This document shows positions 7,107-55,384 of a DNA stretch of 64,000 nt, piece by piece. The stretch is from Piromyces finnis finn (taxonomy: Eukaryota; Fungi; Neocallimastigomycota): the NCBI GenBank assembly GCA_002104945.1, contig MCFH01000029.1:1-64000 (forward strand), written 5' to 3'. The notes under the pieces were generated by a model, which worked only from the letters and a program-made list of their open reading frames with translations, was not told the origin of the DNA and searched no databases. How positions within the stretch are numbered: the first letter of the stretch is position 1; each line of letters opens with the position of its first letter. Both the position numbers and the translations under genes were made by a program.

Positions 7107-7121
7107 TTATCTAATAGATTC

Positions 7122-7980
7122 TGTTAAGGAATGAACATAAATAGTTGAATTAGCTAGAATTTTAGGAATTAACCTTCAACTATTTATATTCCTTACTAGT
7201 GTTTAACTCTATTTTTAAAATATAAAAATTATAATATATAATTTTTATACATTTTTCTAGTAATTATTCATATTTTTATTATATAGTTATATTATTTGTA
7301 TATAGTTATTTAAGACCTTTATTATTAGTATTAGTATAATTACTTATAATATTTTATACTTATAAATTTTACAAAATTTTATTATTAAAATAGTTATAGG
7401 AATTTTATTATTATTTAAGGTTTATTTTATTAATTAACTTTATTGTATAATATTTTATAATTTGAAATTATGACATAGAATTTAATTATAATTTTTACTA
7501 AAAGAGGCAACTGTTACACACAAAACAGAAGATACCTCGACAGAAAAATTATTATTTATGTCTAAAAAAGGGCATAATTAATTGAATAATATAATTTTAT
7601 TATATGTCATAATTAAATATATAATATATGATATGCAAAAATGTTACACATATCATAAATTAAAATTTTATTAATTATAAATTAAAAATTTTTCTATTCA
7701 AATATTAAGAGATTATTCATAATATATATTAAGGATTTAATTAATATATGTTACAGTGAATGATCCATATATTATGAATGAAATCAATTTAAATCCTTAG
7801 CTATCCAAAACCATTAAATTTCAAATAATGGATAGTTGGAAAAAGTACGAGGATTTTTGAGAAAATTTTTAAAAAATTGAAAAATCAAAAATAAATTAAA
7901 TGAATAAAAATTAAAATTAAATAAATTTTTATTTTTATAACTATTCAAGTGTTTTGTGATATCTTATTTGAACCGTAGCA
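7122..7980 (+). repeat. 5' LTR of element 2
   Basis: TGTTAAGG...CCGTAGCA; matches 13298-14156 (one substitution noticed by eye). Confidence 0.95.
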
Positions 7981-13273: not shown

Positions 13274-13297
13274 CTTGAGTTTTAACGAAGGGCATTC

Positions 13298-14156
13298 TGT
13301 TAAGGAATGAACATAAATAGTTGAATTAGCTAGAATTTTAGGAATTAACCTTCAACTATTTATATTCCTTACTAGTGTTTAACTCTATTTTTGAAATATA
13401 AAAATTATAATATATAATTTTTATACATTTTTCTAGTAATTATTCATATTTTTATTATATAGTTATATTATTTGTATATAGTTATTTAAGACCTTTATTA
13501 TTAGTATTAGTATAATTACTTATAATATTTTATACTTATAAATTTTACAAAATTTTATTATTAAAATAGTTATAGGAATTTTATTATTATTTAAGGTTTA
13601 TTTTATTAATTAACTTTATTGTATAATATTTTATAATTTGAAATTATGACATAGAATTTAATTATAATTTTTACTAAAAGAGGCAACTGTTACACACAAA
13701 ACAGAAGATACCTCGACAGAAAAATTATTATTTATGTCTAAAAAAGGGCATAATTAATTGAATAATATAATTTTATTATATGTCATAATTAAATATATAA
13801 TATATGATATGCAAAAATGTTACACATATCATAAATTAAAATTTTATTAATTATAAATTAAAAATTTTTCTATTCAAATATTAAGAGATTATTCATAATA
13901 TATATTAAGGATTTAATTAATATATGTTACAGTGAATGATCCATATATTATGAATGAAATCAATTTAAATCCTTAGCTATCCAAAACCATTAAATTTCAA
14001 ATAATGGATAGTTGGAAAAAGTACGAGGATTTTTGAGAAAATTTTTAAAAAATTGAAAAATCAAAAATAAATTAAATGAATAAAAATTAAAATTAAATAA
14101 ATTTTTATTTTTATAACTATTCAAGTGTTTTGTGATATCTTATTTGAACCGTAGCA
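13298..14156 (+). repeat. 3' LTR of element 2
   Basis: Copy of 7122-7980, preceded by the purine-rich AACGAAGGG plus CATTC. Confidence 0.95.
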
Positions 14157-21718: not shown

Positions 21719-22576
21719 TGCTACGGTTCAAATAAGATATCACAAAACACTTGAATAGTTATAAAAATAAAAATTTATTTAATCTTAATTTTTATTCATT
21801 TAATTTATTTTTGATTTTTCAATTTTTAAAAATTTTCTCAAAAATCCTCGTACTTTTTCCAACTATCCATTATTTGAAATTTAATGGTTTTGGATAGCTA
21901 AGGATTTAAATTGATTTCATTCATAATATATGGATCATTCACTGTAACATATATTAATTAAATCCTTAATATATATTATGAATAATCTCTTAATATTTGA
22001 ATAGAAAAATTTTTAATTTATAATTAATAAAATTTTAATTTATGATATGTGTAACATTTTTGCATATCATATATTATATATTTAATTATGACATATAATA
22101 AAATTATATTATTCAATTAATTATGCCCTTTTTTAGACATAAATAATAATTTTTCTGTCGAGGTATCTTCTGTTTTGTGTGTAACAGTTGCCTCTTTTAG
22201 TAAAAATTATAATTAAATTCTATGTCATAATTTCAAATTATAAAATATTATACAATAAAGTTAATTAATAAAATAAACCTTAAATAATAATAAAATTCCT
22301 ATAACTATTTTAATAATAAAATTTTGTAAAATTTATAAGTATAAAATATTATAAGTAATTATACTAATACTAATAATAAAGGTCTTAAATAACTATATAC
22401 AAATAATATAACTATATAATAAAAATATGAATAATTACTAGAAAAATGTATAAAAATTATATATTATAATTTTTATATTTTAAAAATAGAGTTAAACACT
22501 AGTAAGGAATATAAATAGTTGAAGGTTAATTCCTAAAATTCTAGCTAATTCAACTATTTATGTTCATTCCTTAACA
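21719..22576 (-). mobile_element. Solo LTR of the element-2 family
   Basis: Reverse complement of 7122-7980 with few differences. TSD TAAA at 21715-21718 and 22577-22580. Confidence 0.96.
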
Positions 22577-22590
22577 TAAAAGATATCATT

Positions 22591-22662
22591 GCCCGTTTGG
22601 CTCAGTGGTAGAGCGTCGCTCTCGTAAAGCGAAGATCAGTGGTTCGATCCCGCTAATGGGCA
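22591..22662 (+). tRNA. tRNA-Thr (anticodon CGT), intronless
   Basis: Acceptor GCCCGTT/AATGGGC, D arm GCTC/GAGC, anticodon arm TCGCT-CTCGTAA-AGCGA, T arm AGTGG-TTCGATC-CCGCT. A T5 terminator follows within ~10 nt. Confidence 0.97.
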
Positions 22663-22725
22663 AATTCATTTTTAAAAGTTATTTTTTGTAATTTTTTATT
22701 ATAATAAAAAGATTTTATACTTTGA

Positions 22726-41832: not shown

Positions 41833-42538
41833 GATAATTAATTCTAATTAAAAAATATTGAATATAAAATAAATACTAATAAAAATTACAAATATAACGT
41901 ATATGGAAAAAAATCTGTCTCTCTCTCTCTTCTTAAAAGTACTGGATAGTACAAAAATTGTTACGATGCTTTGTTTAAAGTTTCTTTTTTTTTTTTTTTT
42001 TTTTGAATTCTAGTTGTTAACTTTTTTTAAAAATTCTAGTTTTGGTTTGTTATTAGTAAATTCGATTCGCTTTTTGACACTAAACTTGTTTGACTTTACT
42101 TTTCATTAAATATTTAAATTGGTAAAAAATTTGAATCAAGAATGTCGACACCAGAAAGCTTGTGAATAGTATTTTTACATGATGTAGAGTGAATCAGTCT
42201 CTTACAAGAAACAATACAACAATAGCTACATGAATATAAAAATACAATGCAAATGCTAAAGTTGACTACATTGGATTCTTACAAGAGAAGAGTAGTACTA
42301 CATGAATACATGAATAAAAGAAAAAAATACAGCAACAAAATGTATTACTCTTCTAATTAAATACTATACAAACTTACCTGAGTATCAAACATTCAACTTA
42401 TTCATTAAATACTTAAATTCGATGAATAAAATGTTTTTTAATCGCTCAGTACCATGAGCTTAGTCCTAATAATTTTCCCTTAAAGACTAACCAAGCATCC
42501 ATTGCGCAATACTTGGATTTAATTCTTTCTACTCTCTC

Positions 42539-42580
<42 letters not shown>

Positions 42581-42631
42581 CTAGGAAGAGAATACACATC
42601 TTTTATTTATTTACTTACTTAATTAGTGATA

Positions 42632-45600
42632 TTACATAATATTAGGTGATAATACATATTGATAATGATATAATAAATAATAAATAAAAATAATAAAATA
42701 TATATAAATAAAAATATAAATATAAAAAAATATAAAATAATTATTTAAGTTGCATAAAAGTTCAATGAACTCTGCAATTTGTACTGTGTGGGATTGGTCC
42801 CTACCTAATAAATTAAATGAAATAAAAAAAAGAAGTAACATCAGGTATGATAGTGTGGTGTCCACTAAACTCTCCCATGAGTTCATAATGTTTTCATTCG
42901 AATTTGAGGAAATACTAACATTGAACCCTGTGTACGGAACATTGGAAATGTTCCTTTGCCATATCGGTACGACGTCGGCGCTCTTGATTACGTTAGGTGT
43001 CTTACTAAACCTATCAAAAAGTAGCTTCATAGAGCTACTAATGATAGGGATTGTTTTAGTAAGAAAAGCCGCGAGACCCTCTACATATGGAACATGAGAC
43101 CCCGATGAACTGTAAAGCTGTTCATTCAAATGTCTTTGTTCCGCCTTATCGATTTGTAGCTCATCATAAGCTAAAGTTCTACCAAGAAGGAACGTAAAAA
43201 TATAGTTATAAATTATTTTTCTTACTTCCGTTTCGGGGAGTAAGTATGTGATGAATTGATTCTTATATTTATTGTAAAAAAGGGTAAAAAGATCGTCAAG
43301 AAAGCTAAGTGAAGAAGCTCTGTATTCAGAGAATGCAGAACATTCTAATATCCAATGGTAAAAAGATTGTTCGTCATATCCGCAACATGGACCGACACGA
43401 GGGCAGTCAGGAGTAACTCTATTACTGGCAATAGCAATTCGGGTAGTATTTTCATAACCGCATCGAATACGAATAATCCAGGTAATTCCTAAATTTAAGT
43501 GAGGTTTGTTGAGACCGATATGCATTAGGCGATTTGAATTAAGGAATTTGTTGTTAGTATATCTGAGGGCTTTACTTCCATTATTTAGGCTACTATTATT
43601 CCAATAATATTCTCTAATATCTTTAGTGCTTTTAATATTTATTTTCATAAGCTTCTTATGTAGTGAACAAGATTCTTTGGCCCAAGAGTAATGAGACATG
43701 GGAGGAATAGATCGGACGAGATCTTTAATTATACAATTTGATTTTCTCCATTTAACAAAGCATTTCACTTGTTGCGCAGCACAAATACCTGAAAGGGTAG
43801 GGATCTTCATATCTCTTGTAAGAGCATACAGACTAATAAATGAATTTCGTTCAAAAACAAAATCTTTGTTATTAAAACTTTTATTATGAAAGCTATTGAC
43901 ACTCCATAAAACAGCAGTATTGATAAGAGATTGGACTCTTCTAGTTCTATTTTTGTTGGAACCAAGCAAAGGAGCATAATAAGAGACTTTGCTTAAAATA
44001 TAAGAATGAATTACTATGTTTTTTAAGCCAATAGGAACACAATTGTTGGTGAGGAAGTTCTTAAAAGAGAATAAAGAATTCTGAACTTTTTTGTACATAT
44101 TAGACAGAATAGGAGTCAAAGAAAGATCTTCGTCGAATGGGATTCCAAGATAAGTATAGCAAGAAACCTTTGGAATCGAGTACATACCGATGTAAAATGT
44201 TGAGTCGACATAACTAGGGGATCTATTAAAGTTGATAGGTTTAACAACAATAGTTGCACATTTATTTATTCCAAAAGACATTTCATTTAAATTAGCCCAA
44301 TCAAGGACTAGATTGAGCATCTTTTGAAGGTTCTTCTTACTAGGAGCAATCAAAACAATGTCATCAGCGAAAAGGCCACCACAACAACGTTTATTACCTA
44401 AGCTAACTCCAAGCCTTTCACATTTATTTAAAATATCATTGATAAAGAGGTTAAACAGTATAGGAGAAAGAGGACATCCTTGTCTTACACCACGGTTTAT
44501 AGGGAATTCATTGGAAAGCATATCCAAGAAACGTGCACGAGCTTTAGAGGTAGAGTAGAGATTATTGAGAAAATCAAAACATTTACCACGTATACCTAAT
44601 TTATATAACTTTGTAAGGATATTAAAAATAGGAACTGAGTCGTATGCTTTTTTAAGGTCTAGAAAGGCGACATAAGTGGCTTTTCCTTTAAATTTCCTTC
44701 TTTGACAGATTTCTCTAATGGAAATAAATAAGCTAATACATTCTTCTTTATTGCGAAAACCAAATTGCTCAGGTCTTATAAAATTATGAGAAAGAGCATA
44801 CTTTGAAATTCTATTAGTTACAATTTTTGAAATAATTTCAAGACCTACATTGATGAGAGAAATACCACGATAATTATTACAGTCTGAGAGATCGCCTTAC
44901 TTTGGAATAGAAACAATGGAAGCAGAGTTCCATTTCAAAGGAAAGGAACCATTCCAGATTTTATTAAAAATTAATTTAAGACAATTTCCAGCAGACTTAT
45001 GTTCTTTCTCCAGTTCTTCGTTACAAAAGAAAGCTTTGAAAAATTCAATTGGGATACCATCGGGACCTGGAGCCTTGTTATTCTTCATTGACAGAACAAC
45101 ATTTCTAATTTCCTCAATAGAAATGGGATCATTTATATCCCATGCTATTTGATTGATATGGTTGAATTGGAAGGCTCTTTCCCAGTAACCACGATTTAAG
45201 CTGTGATTTGTAACATCAGATGCAAGATTTTCATAATGTTCAGCCCAACGTTTTAATTGTTCTTGAGGAGTAAATAAATCCTTGCCATTCTTGTCCTTAA
45301 TAGTTGAAACATGGGAGGACGAATAACTTGGTTTGGCAAGTTTTTTAAGGCCTTTCCAACCTTGTCTAAAGCTTTTATCAATAAAATGTTTACCGATAGA
45401 AACAATATTAGCTTTATAGAGATTGGATCTGAATTTGCTCTTAACCTTTTTGATGGTATTACATAGATTTTGGTATATGGAGAACTGGTTAAGATAATTT
45501 TCCATGTCAGCGCAATCTGAAAGGGGCTTAATATTTTTGTAAGCCAGGTGTTTTTCATGTGATAAGTTTTTGATGTATTGAGGGCAATGGAATGCTGGAC

Positions 45601-46930
45601 CTTTTAAATCTGCAGGCACAATGGCTTTTATTTCTTTACCTATAGTTTTGGAAGTATCTAAAAATCTTGAAACCATATCGTCAGCCGAAAGGCTATCACA
45701 ATTAGCTTCAAGCTCGGAAGCTAGAACAGCAAAGCGATTACTAGTAAGAATGTCAGAACACTTTGTGTTACAGATATGACTTGACCACTTAAAGGTCTTC
45801 TTAGGCTTTTTGAAACCATCCGAAGAGTCTTTTTTACAAGACACAAGGATCGGTTTGTGATCAGAAACATCGTGGAAAACTTCACAAACTGAAGATTTGT
45901 TTATGTGTTCTGTCATAGCTTTGTTGTATATAATATGATCAATGCATGAAGATTTAGATCCTTTTTCCCAGGTAAAATTATTACCAGTTAACTCAGCCAT
46001 AGTCCAATCCGGGAAGTGTTGTGATATATAAGATTTGATTTTAATAGCTGACATATTAAAGTCTCCTACAAGGATAGCTGGGTGGTTGAATTTGTTATGC
46101 GTTGTTAACCACTTATCAAGTTCATCAAAGGCAATTAATCTAGCATCCGGCCATCTAGTTTGCGGGAAGTAAATATTACCAATGGTACATCTCTGGTTCC
46201 AAAATGACAATATTGTAACTGAAATGATGTACTTATATAGAAGAGGTTCAGGAGTAAAGGAACAAGAATTATGAACACCAATGTAAAGTCCTCTCATACC
46301 TGGAACTTTAGGATTAGCACGTCTGTGTACTGGTTTATAGTTCGGTAGGCATGGGGAGGAAATTGCATTACCACAGAGGAATTGGCTGTTACCTACTTCT
46401 TGAAGACAGACACATACAGGTTTGAAAACAGAGATGAAGTATAAAACACCGTCCTTTTTCTCCGGGTTCCAACCATTGATGTTCCAACAAGTACATAAGT
46501 TGAAAAAGGAAGCATTAGAGCTTAGATGACTAAAATAGAAATCGTCAGAGAGTGGACCAGTAGTAGATTTGATAGATCGTTTGTTTTTGTATGATCTATT
46601 GTTTTTGAGCTTATCAATGAATTTCCAAGATATTTTACTAGAGATTGGGAGTTTTTCAGAAAGTGAGTGTATAAGTAACATGGCTTTAAGCGGACATTTT
46701 CCATTGACTTTAAGAATGAAATAGATACCGAGTGATTGTGAATATTTTTTGGTGAGGGATTGAAGAATATCATTGAAAGGTTGAATGTCCTTTAAAAGAA
46801 ATTCCATTAGTCGTTGTTTTGACCATGAACTAAGATCATGGATAAAAATTAGATATGATTTATTGGAGTTAGATCCGAAGAAACGAAGACCACGTCGTAA
46901 GGTAGGTACAGTACAATTGGTATTGTTCAT
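42632..46930 (-). pseudogene. Family B APE-RT ORF (1432 codons) with one in-frame TAA at 44897-44899
   Basis: The two ORF-track pieces are in the same frame; IPK*GDLSDCNNYRG is open on both sides. APE motifs WNINGW, LQEV, GDFN, IDH, SDH; RT motifs FLDLKKAYDSV, QGCPLSP, LFADD. Confidence 0.92.
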
Positions 46931-48173
46931 TTTGAAAGAACTTATTATGACAATAGATATTAATAGTTTGAAGTATTGATATAATGATATAAATAAGATA
47001 ATGAAATAAAATATATAGTAAAATAAAAATAATAATAGTAAAGACGGATATAATATATAGCAAGTGGATTATTTGTCAAACAATATTTTAAATTTATAAC
47101 TGGAAAAGTGGCTAAGTTGTTGACAAACTTAGTTCTAACTCTACTGAAGACTTTAAACGGGAAGATAAATTTTGAATATCTATCACTTTGGATTTCTGTA
47201 TTATAACTGTATTTTGAAAGCTCTTTATATTAATAAGAATTGTATAATTTATTGGATGATTATTGTATTGTGTTGATTCTGATTGTTGAAATTGAACATT
47301 CATATAGGTTGTTTATGTTGTAAGGTAGAGAGATAATAAGAGTGAAAAGTTGTTATATCAAAAATAATGGAAAAAAAGTTGAAGAATTTTGGGTAAACAT
47401 AATAAAAAAATTTTTTTTTTTTTTTTTTTTTTAAAGATAAAATTGAAACAAGAGTAGTATTTACAATATAAAAATAGAATACTCGATTTTCCAGGATAGA
47501 AGCTTTGATAATAGAAATGTTAAAGAAAAAAAGGTGTTAATACTTACCATAATAGTCCATAATAAACCTAATTAAGTTATACAGATATATAAATATACAT
47601 ATAATATAGAGTATAAGAAATATATATATATAGAAAAGAGATAGAAAAAGTATACAAAAGAATGTTAGTAGAAAAGAGATTCCTTGGAAAATCTAGAGTT
47701 ACAAAAAAATAAGAAATAAAAAAAGATATTACTAGAATCATATAAAATCATAAAGGAAAAATAAAAAAAAGCCGCGCCCCTCGAAAATAATAAAAATAGA
47801 AAAAATAAAAGATTAAATATGATTATAGTAATGAAAGCTGCACCCCACACGAAACTCAAGAATAAATGAAAGGAATAACCAACTAACTGAAAAAACAAAA
47901 CTATCTGACTAATCAACATATAAAGAATAAAAAAGGAATAAAAGAACAAAGAGAATAAGTAGTAAACTGGGATAACAAATTATCGATGAAAGCTAAAATA
48001 AAAATGAAATCAAGAAATATTCAAAATCAGTATTTAATACTACCGAATCAAACAATTTTAAGTTTAAAATAATATGTTATAAAAGTTGTTAAAGCAACTA
48101 CTATCTAAAAAATAAGTTGAAGGTGTAAGGGATATATGATATAACAACTAACACTCAAATTATCAACTCTGTT

Positions 48174-48345
48174 CGCTCAGTACCATGAGCTTAGTCCTAA
48201 TAATATTTCCAAATAAAGACTAACCAAGTATCCATTGCGCAATACTTGGATTTAATTCTTTCTACTCTCTCAGTACCATGAGCATGAGTAGACCCCCTTG
48301 AGAAACTACATTTATTAAATAAATGAAGGCACGTACCCAAGAGGG
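48174..48345 (-). ncRNA. Conserved structured 5' module of LINE B (copies at 53794-53963 and, split, from 42443)
   Basis: Five stems, with one covarying pair across three copies. G-U wobbles favour the element sense strand. Function unknown. Confidence 0.55.
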
Positions 48346-48405
48346 AAATAATTAGCAGCGGTATGTTACGATCATACTACTCTCTCAGTACCATGAGCAT
48401 GAGTA

Positions 48406-51400
48406 TTTTTTTTTTTTTTTTTTTTTTTTAACGGCATCAAATATTTTAAACTTTATTATTAATTTAATTAAAATTATAATACATGTAATAAAAAATTAAA
48501 AATAAATAAAAATAAAAAAAAATATGTTTAAATAAACACAAATGAATAAAAATTGGGTATAATGTATTCTAGTAATTTTAATTAAAGTAAGAAAGCCACT
48601 ATCATACTAAAGTATAATAATTGTATTTGACTTCCAATGGGACACCGAGCCAAAGATCAAAAATTTTGTCATGGAACAAAATTATGATCTCCATTGGTTG
48701 CGCTGGCCCTCCTGGCCTGTCTTACTGTTTCTTCAGCATTGACGCTCTTGGATGTTGCTTCAAACCTTTTGAACATTGACCATTGCTGGCCAATAGCAAA
48801 AGGCATGATTTTGGTTAGAAGTTCCGCGGTTACCGTCAAGAATGGTGTTCCTTCATTAGTACCAGATTGAATCTGACGCTTACAAAGTTCTTTCCATTCC
48901 CTTGAATTGTAATTGATATTGTTAAAACTTCTTCCCCCAAGAAGGAATTTAAATATTTTACTGCACACACTAGAATAATCATACACATTAATATTCACCG
49001 GATTATTAGAACTATTACTATCATTAACTAAATTACTATCTAAATTAGAATTATTATCTTCACTATTGCTATCATTACTAATATTATTATTTCTATTACT
49101 ACTATTGTTATTATTACTATTGTTACTATTACTATTGTTATTATTACTATTGTTACTATTACTATTAATATTATTACTATCTCTACTGATATTATCAATT
49201 TCATTATTATTGATAGGACTATTGGAATTACGTTGACTGAAAAAATTTAATAGCTGGACTATGGAATCATAATGTTTAATACGGATATCTCTAAATGTTG
49301 GACAATCTAATAACCAATGTTTAATACTTTGATCTCCACACTTGCAACATGGACAGTAGTTAGGACAAACTGGATCAACAAATTTGGCAGCTTTGGCAAC
49401 TCTAGCATCCAACTTGTATCCGCTTCTTGCTTTCAATAGCCAGTAGAAGCCATAGGCAAACTCTGGGTACTCATAACATAATTTAATAAAATCTTTAGTT
49501 TCAATAAACTTATTATCATCATAATATTGCGCTTTGATTGAATTCCCTTTGAGATCTTTCCAATAAAAGTTTTTAACTGCTTTAACATCTCCATGTTTCT
49601 TTAGTTTTTTATCAAGTGTCCTACTTGATTTGCACCACGTGTATTTTCTAAATTTAGGAATGTAATTGACAAGGTATGAGATAATACAATTTGAGTTTTT
49701 CCATTTGTTAAAACATCTAACCTGAGCTAATGCACATTTGGCTGACAATGGAGGAATATTCAAATCTTTTGAAATAGAGTATAAAGATATAAACGATACA
49801 GCTTTATGAACTCCGGCAACCCATCGTATTCCTTTGTTAACATGCTTCTGTGCAATTCTAGACCTGGCTTTGTTGGATCCAAGTAATGGTGCAAAGTATG
49901 AAACTCTGCTAATCACTTGTGAGTTAAGTACTAGCTTTTTGAAGGGAATAGGAATATTAGGATTTCTTAAGAATTTACTGACTGAAAAAAGCCCTTTCAA
50001 AACCTTGTTATTAAGAGCTTTAATAACTGGTTTAAGGGACAGATTCTTATCAAATGGAACACCAAGATAAGTATAACAATCAGTAGTTGGAATGGGTTGT
50101 CCTGCTAAGTAAAATGTTGGATCTCTCTTGTTCTGATTTTCTATTGATTCAGGACGAATCACCATCGTTGAACACTTCTGGATACCAAATTCCATTTCAT
50201 TATACAAGGCCCATTCATTAACTCTTCTAAGCATCTTTTTTAAGCATCCTCTTGTTGGAGCACAAATAACTATATCATCTGCAAAAAGTCCACCACAGCA
50301 TCGAGTGTCACCTAAACTGACTCCGAGATCTTCACACTCTTTAAATATATCATTAATAAAGAGATTAAAGAGAATAGGAGAAAGAGGGCATCCTTGACGG
50401 ACTCCTTTCTTCACATCAAAAGATTTCGAGAATTGTCCATCTAATTTGACATTAGCCTTAGATGTTAAATATAAATTTTTGATGAATTGTAAACTCTTAC
50501 CTCGGATTCCTAAACAATCTAATTTATGGAGAATATTACCGATTGGGACTGAATCGTATGCTTTCCTGAGATCTAAAAAGGCCAAATATGTCTCTTTATT
50601 ATCTAATTGACGTCTACGGCATATTTCTTGGATTGAAATGAAAAGACTGATACTTTCTTCCTTTTTTCGAAAACCAAATTGTTCAGGTCTAATGAAATTA
50701 TTCTTTAGACCATATTCTGAGATTCTAGTGGTGACAATTTTGGAAATCAACTTAATACCATTATTGATAAGTGATATACCTCGATAGTTATCACAATCTG
50801 TCAAATCTCCCTTCTTAGGAATAGAAACAATACTGGATTCATTCCATGAGTTGGGGAAGTCTCCATCCCAAATACGGTTGTATAATTTAAGAATAAAATT
50901 TAAACCATAAGCATCATTATCTGAAGTGGTATTACCGGAAGAATTATTATCTGTAGCATTATTAGAATCATTACTTGATGGAATTAATGCTTTGTAAAAT
51001 TCAATTGGAATACCATCCGGACCTGATGCTTTATAATTCGGAGTAGAGAGGATAGCTGACTTGACTTCATCAATACTAATATCTTGGTTGATATCCCATT
51101 CATCAAGCATAGGGAGTGAAAAACGTTTATTCGTTGGTTCTTCATACCAATGCTCCAAATCAAGACTTACGCCACTTGGATCTGATGCAAGATTTTCGAA
51201 ATGATCATGCCACACATCTAGTTGTTCTTCCGTAGCAACAACTAATTCTCCATTTTTATTTTTAATTGGTTGAGCAATAAAGAAAGAATCTTTTCCAATT
51301 TTTGCAGTTTTCTTGATCCATTTCCAGGCCTTCTTAGGATTATGACTCTTCATATACTCACATCCTGTTTTAATCCAATGAAGATATTCTTGCTTCCTAA

Positions 51401-53964
51401 ATTCATTACATCTTTTGTGGATGTAATCAATGAGCTTACGGTAGATTTTAATTCTTTTAATAAATTCATCTATATCATAAATTCTTTCTTTTTTAAATCT
51501 CTTATACAACTTCATTTTGATTTTTTGAAGATTAAAAATTTGTTGTGAAATATGAAATGAAGACTTTATAGCATTATTTGCTGAGGTAATACTGAGCTCG
51601 TCTGCAATTGAAAAAGCAGTTGAAGTAAATTCTTTGGAAAGATCATCTGTAGAAACATTAGGATCGTTGAATTTTGCTGAAAGTATTTGGAATTTATTAT
51701 GACTGAGAATAGATTCCTTTTCCTCAATACATTTTAATCTATTCCATTTCAGAATTTTCTTAGGAACGTTAAAGTCATTAGAAAAATCTTCCATAGGAAT
51801 AATTTTACCATTAATAAGAAGTGGCTTATGGTCTGATACAGGATAAAAATTATTTATAAATGATCCTGAGTGAATAAGATCTTTCATCTTCGAATTGATA
51901 AGAGCATGGTCAATGTCGGAAGATTGTTCACCTCGAGTCCAAGAGATAGTAGACCCTCTAAGCGGAAGAATTTCCCAATCTCCTAATCCATTAGTTGATA
52001 ACCAGTTGGATAATTTTACTTTAGACATATTAAAATCACCAACAAGAATCGATGGATGGGATGAATGAGTTTGTAACCACAAGCGAACTTCTAACTTTGC
52101 ATGATCAACATAGATGTTGTGATGACTATGAGGCATATAAACATTTCCAATCGAGCATTTGAATCTATTCCAGAGACTAAAAGTATAAATAGAAATAATA
52201 TACTTTCCAGAGAAGTTTTCAAGTGAGGCTTGACACGAATTGTGAAAACCTAAATATAAACCTCTCATTCCCGGAACTGATTCGTCAGCTTTCTTGAAAA
52301 AGTGTCTATAGTTTCGCAAAGTAACACGACAAGGATAATCTGTATTCGAACCAGAACCATTACCAGTTTCTTGGAAACATAAGAATAATGGTTTGAAAAT
52401 AGCTGTGAAATAGCTAATACTATCTCTCTTTTCATGATTCCACCCATTGGTGTTCCAACTAAGACAAAAAGAAAAGTTATCAGGCTTGTTGGATGAGGAA
52501 GAATCGTTGCTATTATTATTATTATTAAAGTCATCGTTATTAATGGATGATGCATCAGAGGAATAAGTAGAACTATTACTAGATGGCTGTGAAACTGAAG
52601 AACTATCAACTATTGAACTGTTATCAGAGTTGATAGAACTATTAGAATTAATTGTTGAATGTTGAGATTGAAATTGTGTTTGCTGTAGATCTGGAATATT
52701 TTCATGATGGGAAACTTGTTGAAGATCCTGTTGAAGATCTCGTTGAAGATCGGATTGTTGATGAGATTGTTGAACTGATTGTTGAACTGATTGTTGAAAT
52801 GATTGTTGAATAGAATGTTGATGTTTATTAGAAACTAAAATTTTACGTTTGAGAGTGGAAAAAGTGTATTTGTGATTCCTTCTACTACGAGCTGAAAAGG
52901 AAATTGAGGTAACTGAAAGTTTCTTCTTTAACATGTGTAAGATTTTAATACAATCTTTTGATGAACCATGAACCTTGACTAAGAAAAAGTGATCATTGAA
53001 AGTTTGAAAATATTTAACACTAATAACTGAATTAAATTTATCTTCTAGAATAACCTCGAGTTTTTCCCATAGCATATTTACTGACCATGATCGAATACCA
53101 CGGATAAAGAAGGAGCGAATATCATCTAAGGGGATACCATAAGACCGGGTACCACGTCTGATATAATTCTTATCTTTAATATAAAGGACTGACATGATAA
53201 TAAATTCTAATTAAAAAATATTGAATATAAAATAAATACTAATAAAAATTACAAATATAACGTATATGGAAAAAAATCTGTCTCTCTCTCTCTTCTTAAA
53301 AGTACTGGATAGTACAAAAATTGTTACGATGCTTTGTTTAAAGTTTCTTATTTTTTGAATTCTAGTTGTAAATTTTCTTTAAAAATTCTAGTTTTGGTTT
53401 GTTGTTAGTAAATTCGATTCGCTTTTTGACACTAAACTTGTTTGACTTTACTTTTCATTAAATATTTAAATTGGTAAAAAATTTGAATCAAGAATGTCGA
53501 CACCAGAAAGCTTGTGAATAGTATTTTTACATGATGTAGAGTGAATCAGTCTCTTACAAGAAACAATACAACAATAGCTACATGAATATAAAAGTACAAT
53601 GCAAATGCTAAAGTTGACTACATTGGATTCTTACAAGAGAAGAGTAGTACTACATGAATACATGAATAAAAGAAAAAATACAGCAACAAAATGTATTACT
53701 CTTCTAATTAAATACTATACAAACTTACCTGAAAAATCAAACATTCACTTATTCATCAAATACTTAAATTTGATGAATAAAATGTTTTTTAATCGCTCAG
53801 TACCATGAGCTTAGTCCTAATAATTTTCCCTTGAAGACTAACCAAGCATCCATTGCGCAATGCTTGGATTTAATTCTTTCTACTCTCTCAGTACCATGAG
53901 CATGAGTAGACCCCCTTGAGAAATTACATTTATTAAATAAATGAAGGCACATTCCTAAGAGGGC
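48406..53964 (-). mobile_element. Full-length LINE family A copy A2
   Basis: T24 tail and intact ORF. Its 5' end coincides with the base of the first module stem. It is flanked by a 68-bp duplication. Confidence 0.93.
48669..53195 (-). CDS. Intact single-ORF LINE protein: N-terminal domain, APE endonuclease, RT, C-terminal CCHC finger (1508 aa)
   Basis: WNTNGW, FQET, GDFN, DIDH, SDH; FLDLRKAYDSV, QGCPLSP, LFADD; CPCC...HWLLDC. Confidence 0.97.
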   Translation of the reverse strand: MSVLYIKDKNYIRRGTRSYGIPLDDIRSFFIRGIRSWSVNMLWEKLEVILEDKFNSVISVKYFQTFNDHFFLVKVHGSSKDCIKILHMLKKKLSVTSISFSARSRRNHKYTFSTLKRKILVSNKHQHSIQQSFQQSVQQSVQQSHQQSDLQRDLQQDLQQVSHHENIPDLQQTQFQSQHSTINSNSSINSDNSSIVDSSSVSQPSSNSSTYSSDASSINNDDFNNNNNSNDSSSSNKPDNFSFCLSWNTNGWNHEKRDSISYFTAIFKPLFLCFQETGNGSGSNTDYPCRVTLRNYRHFFKKADESVPGMRGLYLGFHNSCQASLENFSGKYIISIYTFSLWNRFKCSIGNVYMPHSHHNIYVDHAKLEVRLWLQTHSSHPSILVGDFNMSKVKLSNWLSTNGLGDWEILPLRGSTISWTRGEQSSDIDHALINSKMKDLIHSGSFINNFYPVSDHKPLLINGKIIPMEDFSNDFNVPKKILKWNRLKCIEEKESILSHNKFQILSAKFNDPNVSTDDLSKEFTSTAFSIADELSITSANNAIKSSFHISQQIFNLQKIKMKLYKRFKKERIYDIDEFIKRIKIYRKLIDYIHKRCNEFRKQEYLHWIKTGCEYMKSHNPKKAWKWIKKTAKIGKDSFFIAQPIKNKNGELVVATEEQLDVWHDHFENLASDPSGVSLDLEHWYEEPTNKRFSLPMLDEWDINQDISIDEVKSAILSTPNYKASGPDGIPIEFYKALIPSSNDSNNATDNNSSGNTTSDNDAYGLNFILKLYNRIWDGDFPNSWNESSIVSIPKKGDLTDCDNYRGISLINNGIKLISKIVTTRISEYGLKNNFIRPEQFGFRKKEESISLFISIQEICRRRQLDNKETYLAFLDLRKAYDSVPIGNILHKLDCLGIRGKSLQFIKNLYLTSKANVKLDGQFSKSFDVKKGVRQGCPLSPILFNLFINDIFKECEDLGVSLGDTRCCGGLFADDIVICAPTRGCLKKMLRRVNEWALYNEMEFGIQKCSTMVIRPESIENQNKRDPTFYLAGQPIPTTDCYTYLGVPFDKNLSLKPVIKALNNKVLKGLFSVSKFLRNPNIPIPFKKLVLNSQVISRVSYFAPLLGSNKARSRIAQKHVNKGIRWVAGVHKAVSFISLYSISKDLNIPPLSAKCALAQVRCFNKWKNSNCIISYLVNYIPKFRKYTWCKSSRTLDKKLKKHGDVKAVKNFYWKDLKGNSIKAQYYDDNKFIETKDFIKLCYEYPEFAYGFYWLLKARSGYKLDARVAKAAKFVDPVCPNYCPCCKCGDQSIKHWLLDCPTFRDIRIKHYDSIVQLLNFFSQRNSNSPINNNEIDNISRDSNNINSNSNNSNNNNSNSNNSNNNNSSNRNNNISNDSNSEDNNSNLDSNLVNDSNSSNNPVNINVYDYSSVCSKIFKFLLGGRSFNNINYNSREWKELCKRQIQSGTNEGTPFLTVTAELLTKIMPFAIGQQWSMFKRFEATSKSVNAEETVRQARRASATNGDHNFVP

Positions 53965-55384
53965 ACCAAGCATCCATTGCGCAATACTTGGATTTAATTC
54001 TTTCTACTCTCTCAGTACCATGAGCATGAGTAGACCCCCTTGAGAAACTACATTTATTAAATAAATGAAGGCACGTTCCCAAGAGGGATTTATTGCCTTT
54101 AAATCATTTAAACATTGATTCTATTTTATTGTTGAAAAAAAAAAAAAAAAGTTTAACGCATTAACCATCAAAAAATAGAAATTTTCAATTTTCTTTATTT
54201 GAATTTTATATAATATTATTTAATATCAATACTATAATCCATATTCATTGTTCTTTTTTTTATACTATTTCAACACACAAAAAATTTATTCAAAATTATT
54301 TATATTTTTTTGTATATAAAAATTTTTATTAAAATTTAATAATATTTAATGATATTAATAAAAGAATAAATATAAAAGTAAATTATATTCAATTCAATTT
54401 ACTAATAATAAATATCTTAAAAAAAGATATCATTAGAATTACATTATCATGAATAATTATAAATTATAAAGTATTTTTAAAAAAAATTGAAATAATATAA
54501 AATATAAATTAATATATTTGTTTTGTCAAATTAAAATATTAAAACTAAAAAACTATAATTATTGCTTTAAAAAAAATGCAAATTATGATTTTAAAATTTC
54601 TTTTAAATAAAAGTATTTAATTTTGTTTAAATTAAAAAATTATTTGTTTAAATAGTTAATTTAGATTTTGTTTGCTTTTTTTCATTTTTTTTAATTATTT
54701 GGATTTGTGCTTTAAAATTCTAAAAAGGTATGTAGTTGACCTTTAGTATAAACAATTTATTATGCTCGACTAATTTCATAAACTTGTTGGTATTGGTGAA
54801 ATTTTTATTACTTTTAGTGTAGTTAATAAATTTTGTTGCTTCTTTAGGATAAGATGGATTTCACTGGTAAAAAATCTTATAGTATTGCCTTTTATGCTTG
54901 GCTATTATAATTAGATAGCGCGTAAATGTTGATTTAGATTGAATATATACAATTCACATGATATATATAATTTACTTGACTTTAAAATAGCATTAGCTAT
55001 CTATTTATAATAAATTATAGAAGTATTATTGTTGATAATTATTATTTTTAAAGAGTTTAAAATTAATTTAAGTTTAACAATATTTGGTTGATAATTCTTT
55101 AAAATCATATTTTGGCGGAATTTTTAAAAAAGAGAATAGTTTTTAATTAGCTCCATTTTAGTTAATTAAATCTAAAAATATAATATATTTTAAATTCTAA
55201 AGCAAATAGGTTTTTTTCTTTTAGAAAATGCTATAGAATGTATAAAAAACATATTATAAATATTAATTTTTGCATATATTAACTTGGTGTTTTTTTAAAA
55301 CTTCAATTTTTTAAAAAAAATTATAAATTATAATTCATCCATTATATATTGCATTCTGTTTTTAAAAAAGGAATTTAACTGTTT

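Follow-up and report, generated by a model that had tools for sequence, protein, structure and literature searches.

A predicted pseudoknotted RNA head at the 5' ends of divergent LINE families of anaerobic gut fungi

Introduction

HDV-like ribozymes release the RNAs of R2, RTE and L1Tc retrotransposons. In R2, which is site-specific and co-transcribed with rRNA, the 5' UTR RNA comprises an HDV-like ribozyme and a protein-binding pseudoknot. Mouse L1 elements carry tandem 5' monomers which act as promoters without a covarying RNA fold, and L1 subfamilies acquire new 5' ends. Retroviral RNAs have a hairpin loop with a 6-nt palindrome (DIS) and, in the R region, terminal homology able to guide strand transfer. 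For the L1Tc/ingi elements of trypanosomatids, promoter activity as well as cleavage have been demonstrated for the 77-nt, HDV-like sequence called Pr77 or L1TcRz (PMC1874656, PMC3185411, PMC3383444, PMC4035085). The A-module of the Dictyostelium element TRE5-A is a plain promoter that can be replaced by the actin promoter (PMC3159450).

Here, we analysed a stretch of 64,000 nucleotides of Piromyces finnis (called the window for simplicity), in which two divergent LINE families, A and B, share a structured module at their extreme 5' ends. Like Pr77, the module is a short segment that starts at nt 1, is common to divergent families of one host clade, is predicted to form a pseudoknotted RNA and is proposed to act both as DNA and as RNA; in trypanosomatids the sharing set consists of a LINE and non-autonomous families. 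Unlike Pr77, the module has a core of ~123 nt with three domains and a kiss between a bulge and a loop, lacks HDV features or an Rfam match, and is known here from sequence alone. It resembles the R2 5' RNA as a pseudoknotted, structured LINE 5' end whose shape is conserved over its sequence, but the gut-fungus elements are dispersed, the module is common to several families and the topology is different. With the mouse L1 monomers it shares the tandem repetition of units at the 5' end of the element and the gain of 5' ends by different families, whereas its units start exactly at the first base of the RNA and end at varied points, resembling template switching. Like the TRE5-A A-module, it is a LINE 5' module of roughly 200 bp in a very AT-rich genome, but organism and element differ. 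A palindromic 6-nt hairpin loop and terminal homology able to guide strand transfer are reminiscent of the retroviral R region and DIS; in contrast to the DIS, palindromes are missing from some module types, and kissing is a candidate interaction read from the nucleotide sequence.

Results

Three LINEs with a common 5' module

The window is very AT-rich (GC 12-34%) and contains three LINEs arranged head to tail on its minus strand: A2, B and A1. The A-family element A2 is whole (54087 to ~48405) and has two module units at its 5' end; its body (48405..53963) consists of the module, ~770 nt of A-type UTR, an intact reading frame of 1508 aa with APE, RT and a CCHC knuckle, and a poly(A). The body of the B-family element (42541..48345) has a 1.4-kb 5' UTR, broken APE and RT frames and a poly(A) at 42541-42577, and A1, a second A-family LINE, is 5'-truncated (42540 to ~37030). 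The relatives of the ORF proteins come from rumen and gut metagenomes, gut-fungus data and one Orpinomyces gene model, for which reason identity of the module with the TRE5-A A-module was rejected.

An N-terminal domain of ~100 aa is conserved in both LINE families (coded on the minus strand at 52806-53195 in A and 46541-46930 in B). It contains the motif RRGxRxxG followed by LIFIxxLxSW and is predicted to be ferredoxin-like (beta-alpha-beta-beta-alpha-beta, pLDDT 79). The domain had no Pfam match and, since its structural matches were only generic, we did not assign it a role as RNA-binding domain or protein partner. Within the A-type 5' UTR, a block (..TGTAAGAG..TGATTCACTC..) is conserved at the DNA level between sources in otherwise diverged flanking UTR (window ~53525-53560 on the minus strand; L031:~680-715; L034:~420-455; L045:~200-235; L148:~345-380). 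The window also contains a tRNA-Thr(CGT) gene (22590-22663) with a repeated LTR-like sequence directly upstream (inverted repeats at 21763-22579 matching 7119-7935 and 13295-14111).

The 172-nt module is present in full at the 5' end of the B element (48174..48345, minus strand; module position p corresponds to window coordinate 48346-p). All further copies in the window lie on the same strand: the upstream unit of A2, which comprises p1-123 plus a G (53964..54087), the full module of A2 followed by the A-type 5' UTR (53794..53963), the A1 module from p73 on, which is interrupted by the B insertion (42443..42540), and a 29-nt remnant of the A1 module (p56-84; 48377..48405) between the A2 poly(A) and a 31-nt filler preceding B. 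As claimed in the preliminary description, A and B share a near-identical 5' module: the two A-family copies in the window are 93-96% identical to that of B, whereas the proteins have 38% identity in the APE half and the 5' UTRs are unrelated 3' of the module.

Hundreds of near-identical module copies are found at unrelated sites of the genome. With the 172 nt as query, a rough count of 391 candidates was obtained, as compared to 870 for the A 3' end, and a covariance-model search of the same genome gave at least 150 top-scoring matches, all of them near-identical copies, with no older diverged module family among them. At 60 sampled loci the module was always followed by an A-type or B-type UTR, the exception being one recombinant type (L025/L131; G000:C1:2590593-2590764), in which an additional, 5'-truncated unit lies upstream of an A-type body with a B-like S4 loop. 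In the middle of the ORF, copies of A are 100% identical. The A and B LINEs are evidently very active and dispersed.

Predicted fold of the module

Unguided folding of the 172 nt with RNAfold yielded an MFE of -52.4 kcal/mol (z = -3.7), and the 124-nt core gave z = -4.35. The first 123 nt comprise three domains, namely S1 with an inner hairpin, the nested S2 and the S3 hairpin (all coordinates on the minus strand). The 5' arm of S1 (p1-12; 48334..48345), with C1 at the base of the helix, includes two G.U pairs with the 3' arm (p42-53; 48293..48304), and the inner hairpin of this domain, H1, spans p21-37 (48309..48325). S2 (p54-85; 48261..48292) has an outer stem of 7 bp, an inner stem of 4 bp and the loop UGGUAC. 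The S3 hairpin (p97-122; 48224..48249) has a stem of 8 bp and the loop UGCGCAAUGG, which includes the palindrome UUGCGCAA. S4 and S5 (p123-171; 48175..48223), of which S5 repeats the CUCA-UGGUAC-UGAG hairpin, are an extension specific to this genome; they are not conserved in other fungi and are missing from the 123-nt repeat unit. Every stem listed in the preliminary description is present on the minus strand of 48174-48345 and was recovered by the unguided folding. The single pair described there as C-G, T-A or a G-U wobble was located at S3 columns 106/121 (CG:2, UG:2, UA:1).

The same architecture in other gut fungi

LINE contigs of other sources were gathered through their proteins. The complete arrangement, with S1 beginning at nt 1 with CCC, a pseudoknot between bulge and loop, a nested S2 and the S3 hairpin, was found in the window copies and in eight of these contigs (L053, L031, L032, L057, L062, L038, L150 and L147), usually near the start of the 5' UTR. 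Across the module types S1 has 7-12 bp, opens with CCC, closes with GGG and usually encloses H1, which has 5-9 bp and a loop of 3-5 nt and is absent in L031/L032/L057. S2 has an outer stem of 6-11 bp, an inner stem of 3-6 bp and a 6-nt loop with GUAC or a close variant, and S3 is a hairpin of 6-10 bp with a loop that is mostly UGCGCAAUGR. The L038/L147 type has lost this loop motif, so that a binding site is not defined by any one conserved sequence. The stem sequences are almost wholly different between types, as exemplified by the inner stems of S2 (CUCA/UGAG, CUCG/CGAG, AGCUG/CAGCU, AUUCCU/AGGAAU and CCA/UGG). Each type folds alone to the same architecture, with z between -3.4 and -4.7.

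The pairing of the bulged GTGCC with the loop GGTAC, which had been put forward as a possibility, is available in the window copy, and the pseudoknot is kept in three lineages in all. In this genome the 5-bp pseudoknot is predicted between GUGCC in the internal loop of S1 (p14-18; 48328..48332, minus strand) and GGUAC in the inner loop of S2 (48273-48277, minus strand). Every module type has such a pairing between the S2 inner loop and the strand that directly follows the 5' arm of S1, namely GUAUC:GGUAC in L053, CCGUA:UACGG or UGCGG in L032, L057 and L031, and GUACU:AGUAC in L038, L147, L150 and L062. C-G is replaced by U-A at one position, and at others a change of one partner leaves the pairing intact. 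When the bulge was shuffled, such a 5-bp match arose by chance in 2-10% of the trials per type; chance is thus unlikely for a pseudoknot present in three independent lineages.

Built from copies of this genome only, a covariance model detected L053 with 57 bits (E about 1e-13) and, with filters off, L032, L057 and L031 with 15-20 bits (E about 1e-3 to 1e-2). The contig positions of these matches fit LINE 5' ends, and those in L032, L057 and L031 are the module positions found by eye. Over both models used (R1 and R2), L053 was matched strongly and the L031/L032/L057 types weakly, and L062 and L038 were misaligned. In the alignment of this genome's copies with L053, which was fitted to the structure and has one partial row, 99% of the cells pair and both partners have changed in 12 pairs; this number was reached by 0/500 shuffles, and slid controls gave ≤2. 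Between L147 and L150 (L038 type), H1 and S3 show compensating changes, and a U-A pair of the S2 inner stem becomes U.G. Covariation across species is found, its absence from a larger alignment, jointly with a lack of structure or cleavage in vitro, having been named at the outset as the outcome that would leave only a DNA-level promoter or target role. Because a MAFFT alignment of all module types was structurally wrong and was discarded, the comparison between types was curated by hand and script. A descriptor scan for the module was too loose and also matched GC-rich unrelated contigs.

The curated helices contain 258 Watson-Crick pairs, 17 G.U pairs, 1 A.C and 3 other mismatches, a contrast that is inflated by bounding the helices with G.U allowed and amounts to ~7 to 1 if internal independent cases only are counted. 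Since each G.U pair is an A.C on the other strand, the excess of G.U indicates that folding is maintained in the sense strand, which argues against symmetric protein sites, cruciforms and minus-strand cDNA. These data bear on the reading that the module acts at the DNA level only, i.e. as an internal promoter and/or preferred target with inverted repeats that bind protein or form cruciforms and an RNA fold devoid of function. The palindromic loop sequence TTGCGCAA would suit such a site, but the S3 arms lie off-centre relative to its dyad, and the combination of covarying stems and constant loops is the reverse of what conservation of half-sites predicts. Taken together, the comparison shows a head whose sense strand, as predicted from these sequences, keeps a fold with three helical domains and a bulge-loop pseudoknot, and the module is, on this evidence, a real RNA element, structured and under selection.

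A second kind of 5' module was seen in other gut-fungus LINE lineages. It is a long terminal hairpin which starts with CCCCGATGAAG and closes with GGGG (L063:783-820, L034:83-190, L148:55-130, L043:~105-150, L068:~44-90, L046:~22-60 and L053:~200-240); it occurs in tandem in L034 and L148 and is followed by a hairpin with a loop resembling that of S3.

Exchange of the module between LINE families

The ORF of L032 is the B orthologue and that of L031 the A orthologue (60% identity each), A-like and B-like proteins being 38-43% identical to each other. The two contigs come from sister assemblies, of which that of L031 also contains the B-like protein. Their modules are near-identical mutually and very different from those of this genome. 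In general, module identity is about 95% within a source, and between sources it is only the structure that identifies a module. As A and B orthologues of this second source share one diverged module, the module moves between families. In this genome, some B elements have an upstream A-type unit, which shows a transfer in progress. The sequences thus compared show a module that is swapped between LINE families within a genome and diverges fast between genomes.

RNA start, tandem units and insertion sites

About 80% of the sampled full-length A and B copies begin at C1 (CCCTC) after unrelated flanks, and the rest lack 1-12 nt; C1 is always abutted by filler or other sequence. The start of A2 at the base of stem 1, described previously, is shared by most full-length copies at unrelated loci, which begin exactly at C1. 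This shows, as judged from the ends of the copies, that the module belongs to the retrotransposed RNA and that C1 is the start of this RNA.

Two to five tandem units are found at element 5' ends, with periods of 124, 129, 137, about 210 and others. A five-unit array ahead of an A element (G000:C156:866206-866740; L137-L139) has a period of 137 and identical junctions (..AAGG+AT+CCCTC). At tandem junctions the downstream unit always begins at C1, while the ends of the upstream unit vary (66, 120, 123+G, ~135+AT, ~208+T), with p120-123, at the 3' base of S3, as the most frequent end; the 123+G junction recurs in several independent insertions. These junctions look like the product of a reverse transcriptase that reaches the end of its template and continues on a second RNA that carries a module. 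A B element with two units (A-type unit, G, B module) lies inside a single 13-bp target duplication and was therefore copied as one piece, with its internal C1 uncut.

In the window, B is inserted at p73 of the A1 module between the 12-bp direct repeats CTGAGAGAGTAG (42529-42540 and 48377-48388), and on contig C151 another A copy lies inside a module at p54 with the 12-bp duplication TCTACTCATGCT (L151 and L152; G000:C151:137500-138000 and 131900-132100). Since 12-bp repeats flank both insertions, the nesting is real, and a pure template-jump origin of the window array was rejected in part. Several other A poly(A) tails abut p54-56 of a module, and the 5' junctions of insertions into the module contain 5-31 nt of filler. 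The module DNA is, by these junctions, an insertion hot spot at p54-56 and p73. Upstream of the module in L053 (1-49), L062 (2740-2819) and L029 lies an internal fragment of another LINE ORF, directly followed by a full module at C1; such joins reflect nested insertion or template switching in other fungi as well.

Comparison with known ribozymes

The module had been described as matching no ribozyme core that could be checked by eye, and the Rfam search agrees with this. There was no match at E up to 10 in the window and none at E up to 5 in eight contigs from other fungi; the models for HDV, CPEB3, drz, hammerhead, twister, pistol, hatchet and hairpin remained unmatched in all of them. Mapped by hand onto the HDV-like fold (nested double pseudoknot, 3-bp P3, L3, P1.1), the module showed a different topology: the 3' strand of its pseudoknot lies inside the hairpin loop of inner S2 and not after P4, and in the place of a 3-bp P3 there is H1 with its 5-9 bp, missing altogether in the L031/L032 type. 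No junction nucleotides are conserved across the module types, and the junctions adjoining C1 vary in length and sequence. The module matches no catalogued RNA and is a candidate for a new Rfam family.

Discussion

We propose that the ~123-nt unit is the 5' RNA head of a clade of single-ORF, APE-type LINEs of the Neocallimastigomycota, which combines a DNA promoter with a selected, structured RNA leader, and to this reading as a whole we assign a probability of about 0.5. As DNA, the unit would be an internal promoter that sets the start at C1, in the manner of an L1 monomer or Pr77. Dispersed active elements need an internal promoter, and the unit is the only segment that is shared, terminal and multiplied; by its position and tandem repetition, the sole basis of this assignment, the module DNA probably carries an internal promoter. 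As RNA, the head would be compact, with its first base within a GC-rich helix, and may be under selection because it shields the 5' end or flags it to the LINE ribonucleoprotein or a host factor. The head would also offer homology for strand transfer at the 5' end, by which the module could spread between families. Both roles, as DNA promoter and as RNA, probably coexist in the same sequence. An RNA start with C is unusual for polymerase initiation and would fit processing better.

The suggestion of a functional RNA, as first made, covered self-cleavage as well as packaging, dimerisation or a translation element. Its core has held: covariation, the excess of G.U pairs and the pseudoknot in three lineages all speak for a structured RNA under selection. 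Self-cleavage is not supported, given the non-HDV topology, the variable junctions and the uncut two-unit elements. Roles of the module in packaging, dimerisation and translation are possible.

A function at the DNA level only is an improbable alternative in our view. It would account for tandem multiplication as in L1 promoter monomers and for the module being an insertion hot spot with 12-bp target duplications, but an element has no benefit in being a target, and the excess of G.U over A.C shows that pairing is kept on the sense strand only.

About equally doubtful is a role as RNA dimerisation and strand-transfer element, in which palindromic loops (UGCGCA in S3 and GUAC in S2) would kiss like the retroviral DIS and terminal homology would guide the end of the cDNA. 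It would account for the tandem units and for the trading of modules between families, including the B elements that carry an A-type unit upstream; the self-complementary loop motifs, conserved in most types, and the frequent end of upstream units at the 3' base of S3 are in keeping with it. However, the L031/L032 loops (GUGCGG, GUACGG) are not palindromic and pair intramolecularly with the S1 loop, the S3 loop of the L038/L147 type is not palindromic either, and we know of no LINE that requires a dimeric RNA.

With a similarly low likelihood, the head may be a new kind of RNA that defines a 5' end, either self-processing or guiding a host RNase with a fold unlike that of known ribozymes, or a strand-transfer head that blocks exonucleases and serves for trading 5' ends.

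The least probable reading is that a new self-cleaving ribozyme, or a structure guiding a host RNase, frees the LINE RNA at C1 from read-through transcripts: it is favoured by an RNA start that is a C and the first base of a helix, by a pseudoknot that joins the strand adjoining S1 with a downstream loop and by the frequent head-to-tail nesting of elements, where read-through would happen, but it is opposed by the empty Rfam searches at permissive thresholds in this genome and other sources, the unfamiliar topology, the variable junctions next to C1 and the identical 123+G junction in several independent insertions, and self-cleavage is unlikely because two-unit elements with one target duplication were copied uncleaved.

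Turning back to the combined promoter and RNA leader, its interest lies in the small number of lineages in which the problem of a defined LINE 5' end has been solved, namely by HDV-like ribozymes, the L1 and Pr77 promoters and the R2 5' RNA. A very active LINE clade of poorly studied fungi appears to use a different, pseudoknotted head, which is swapped between families that are 40% identical. With ~123 nt, it would provide a compact test case of how selection acts on LINE leaders at the RNA level, how templates are switched at RNA 5' ends and how promoters are captured, and the module, as a promoter or stable leader, may offer a handle for genetic tools in anaerobic fungi.
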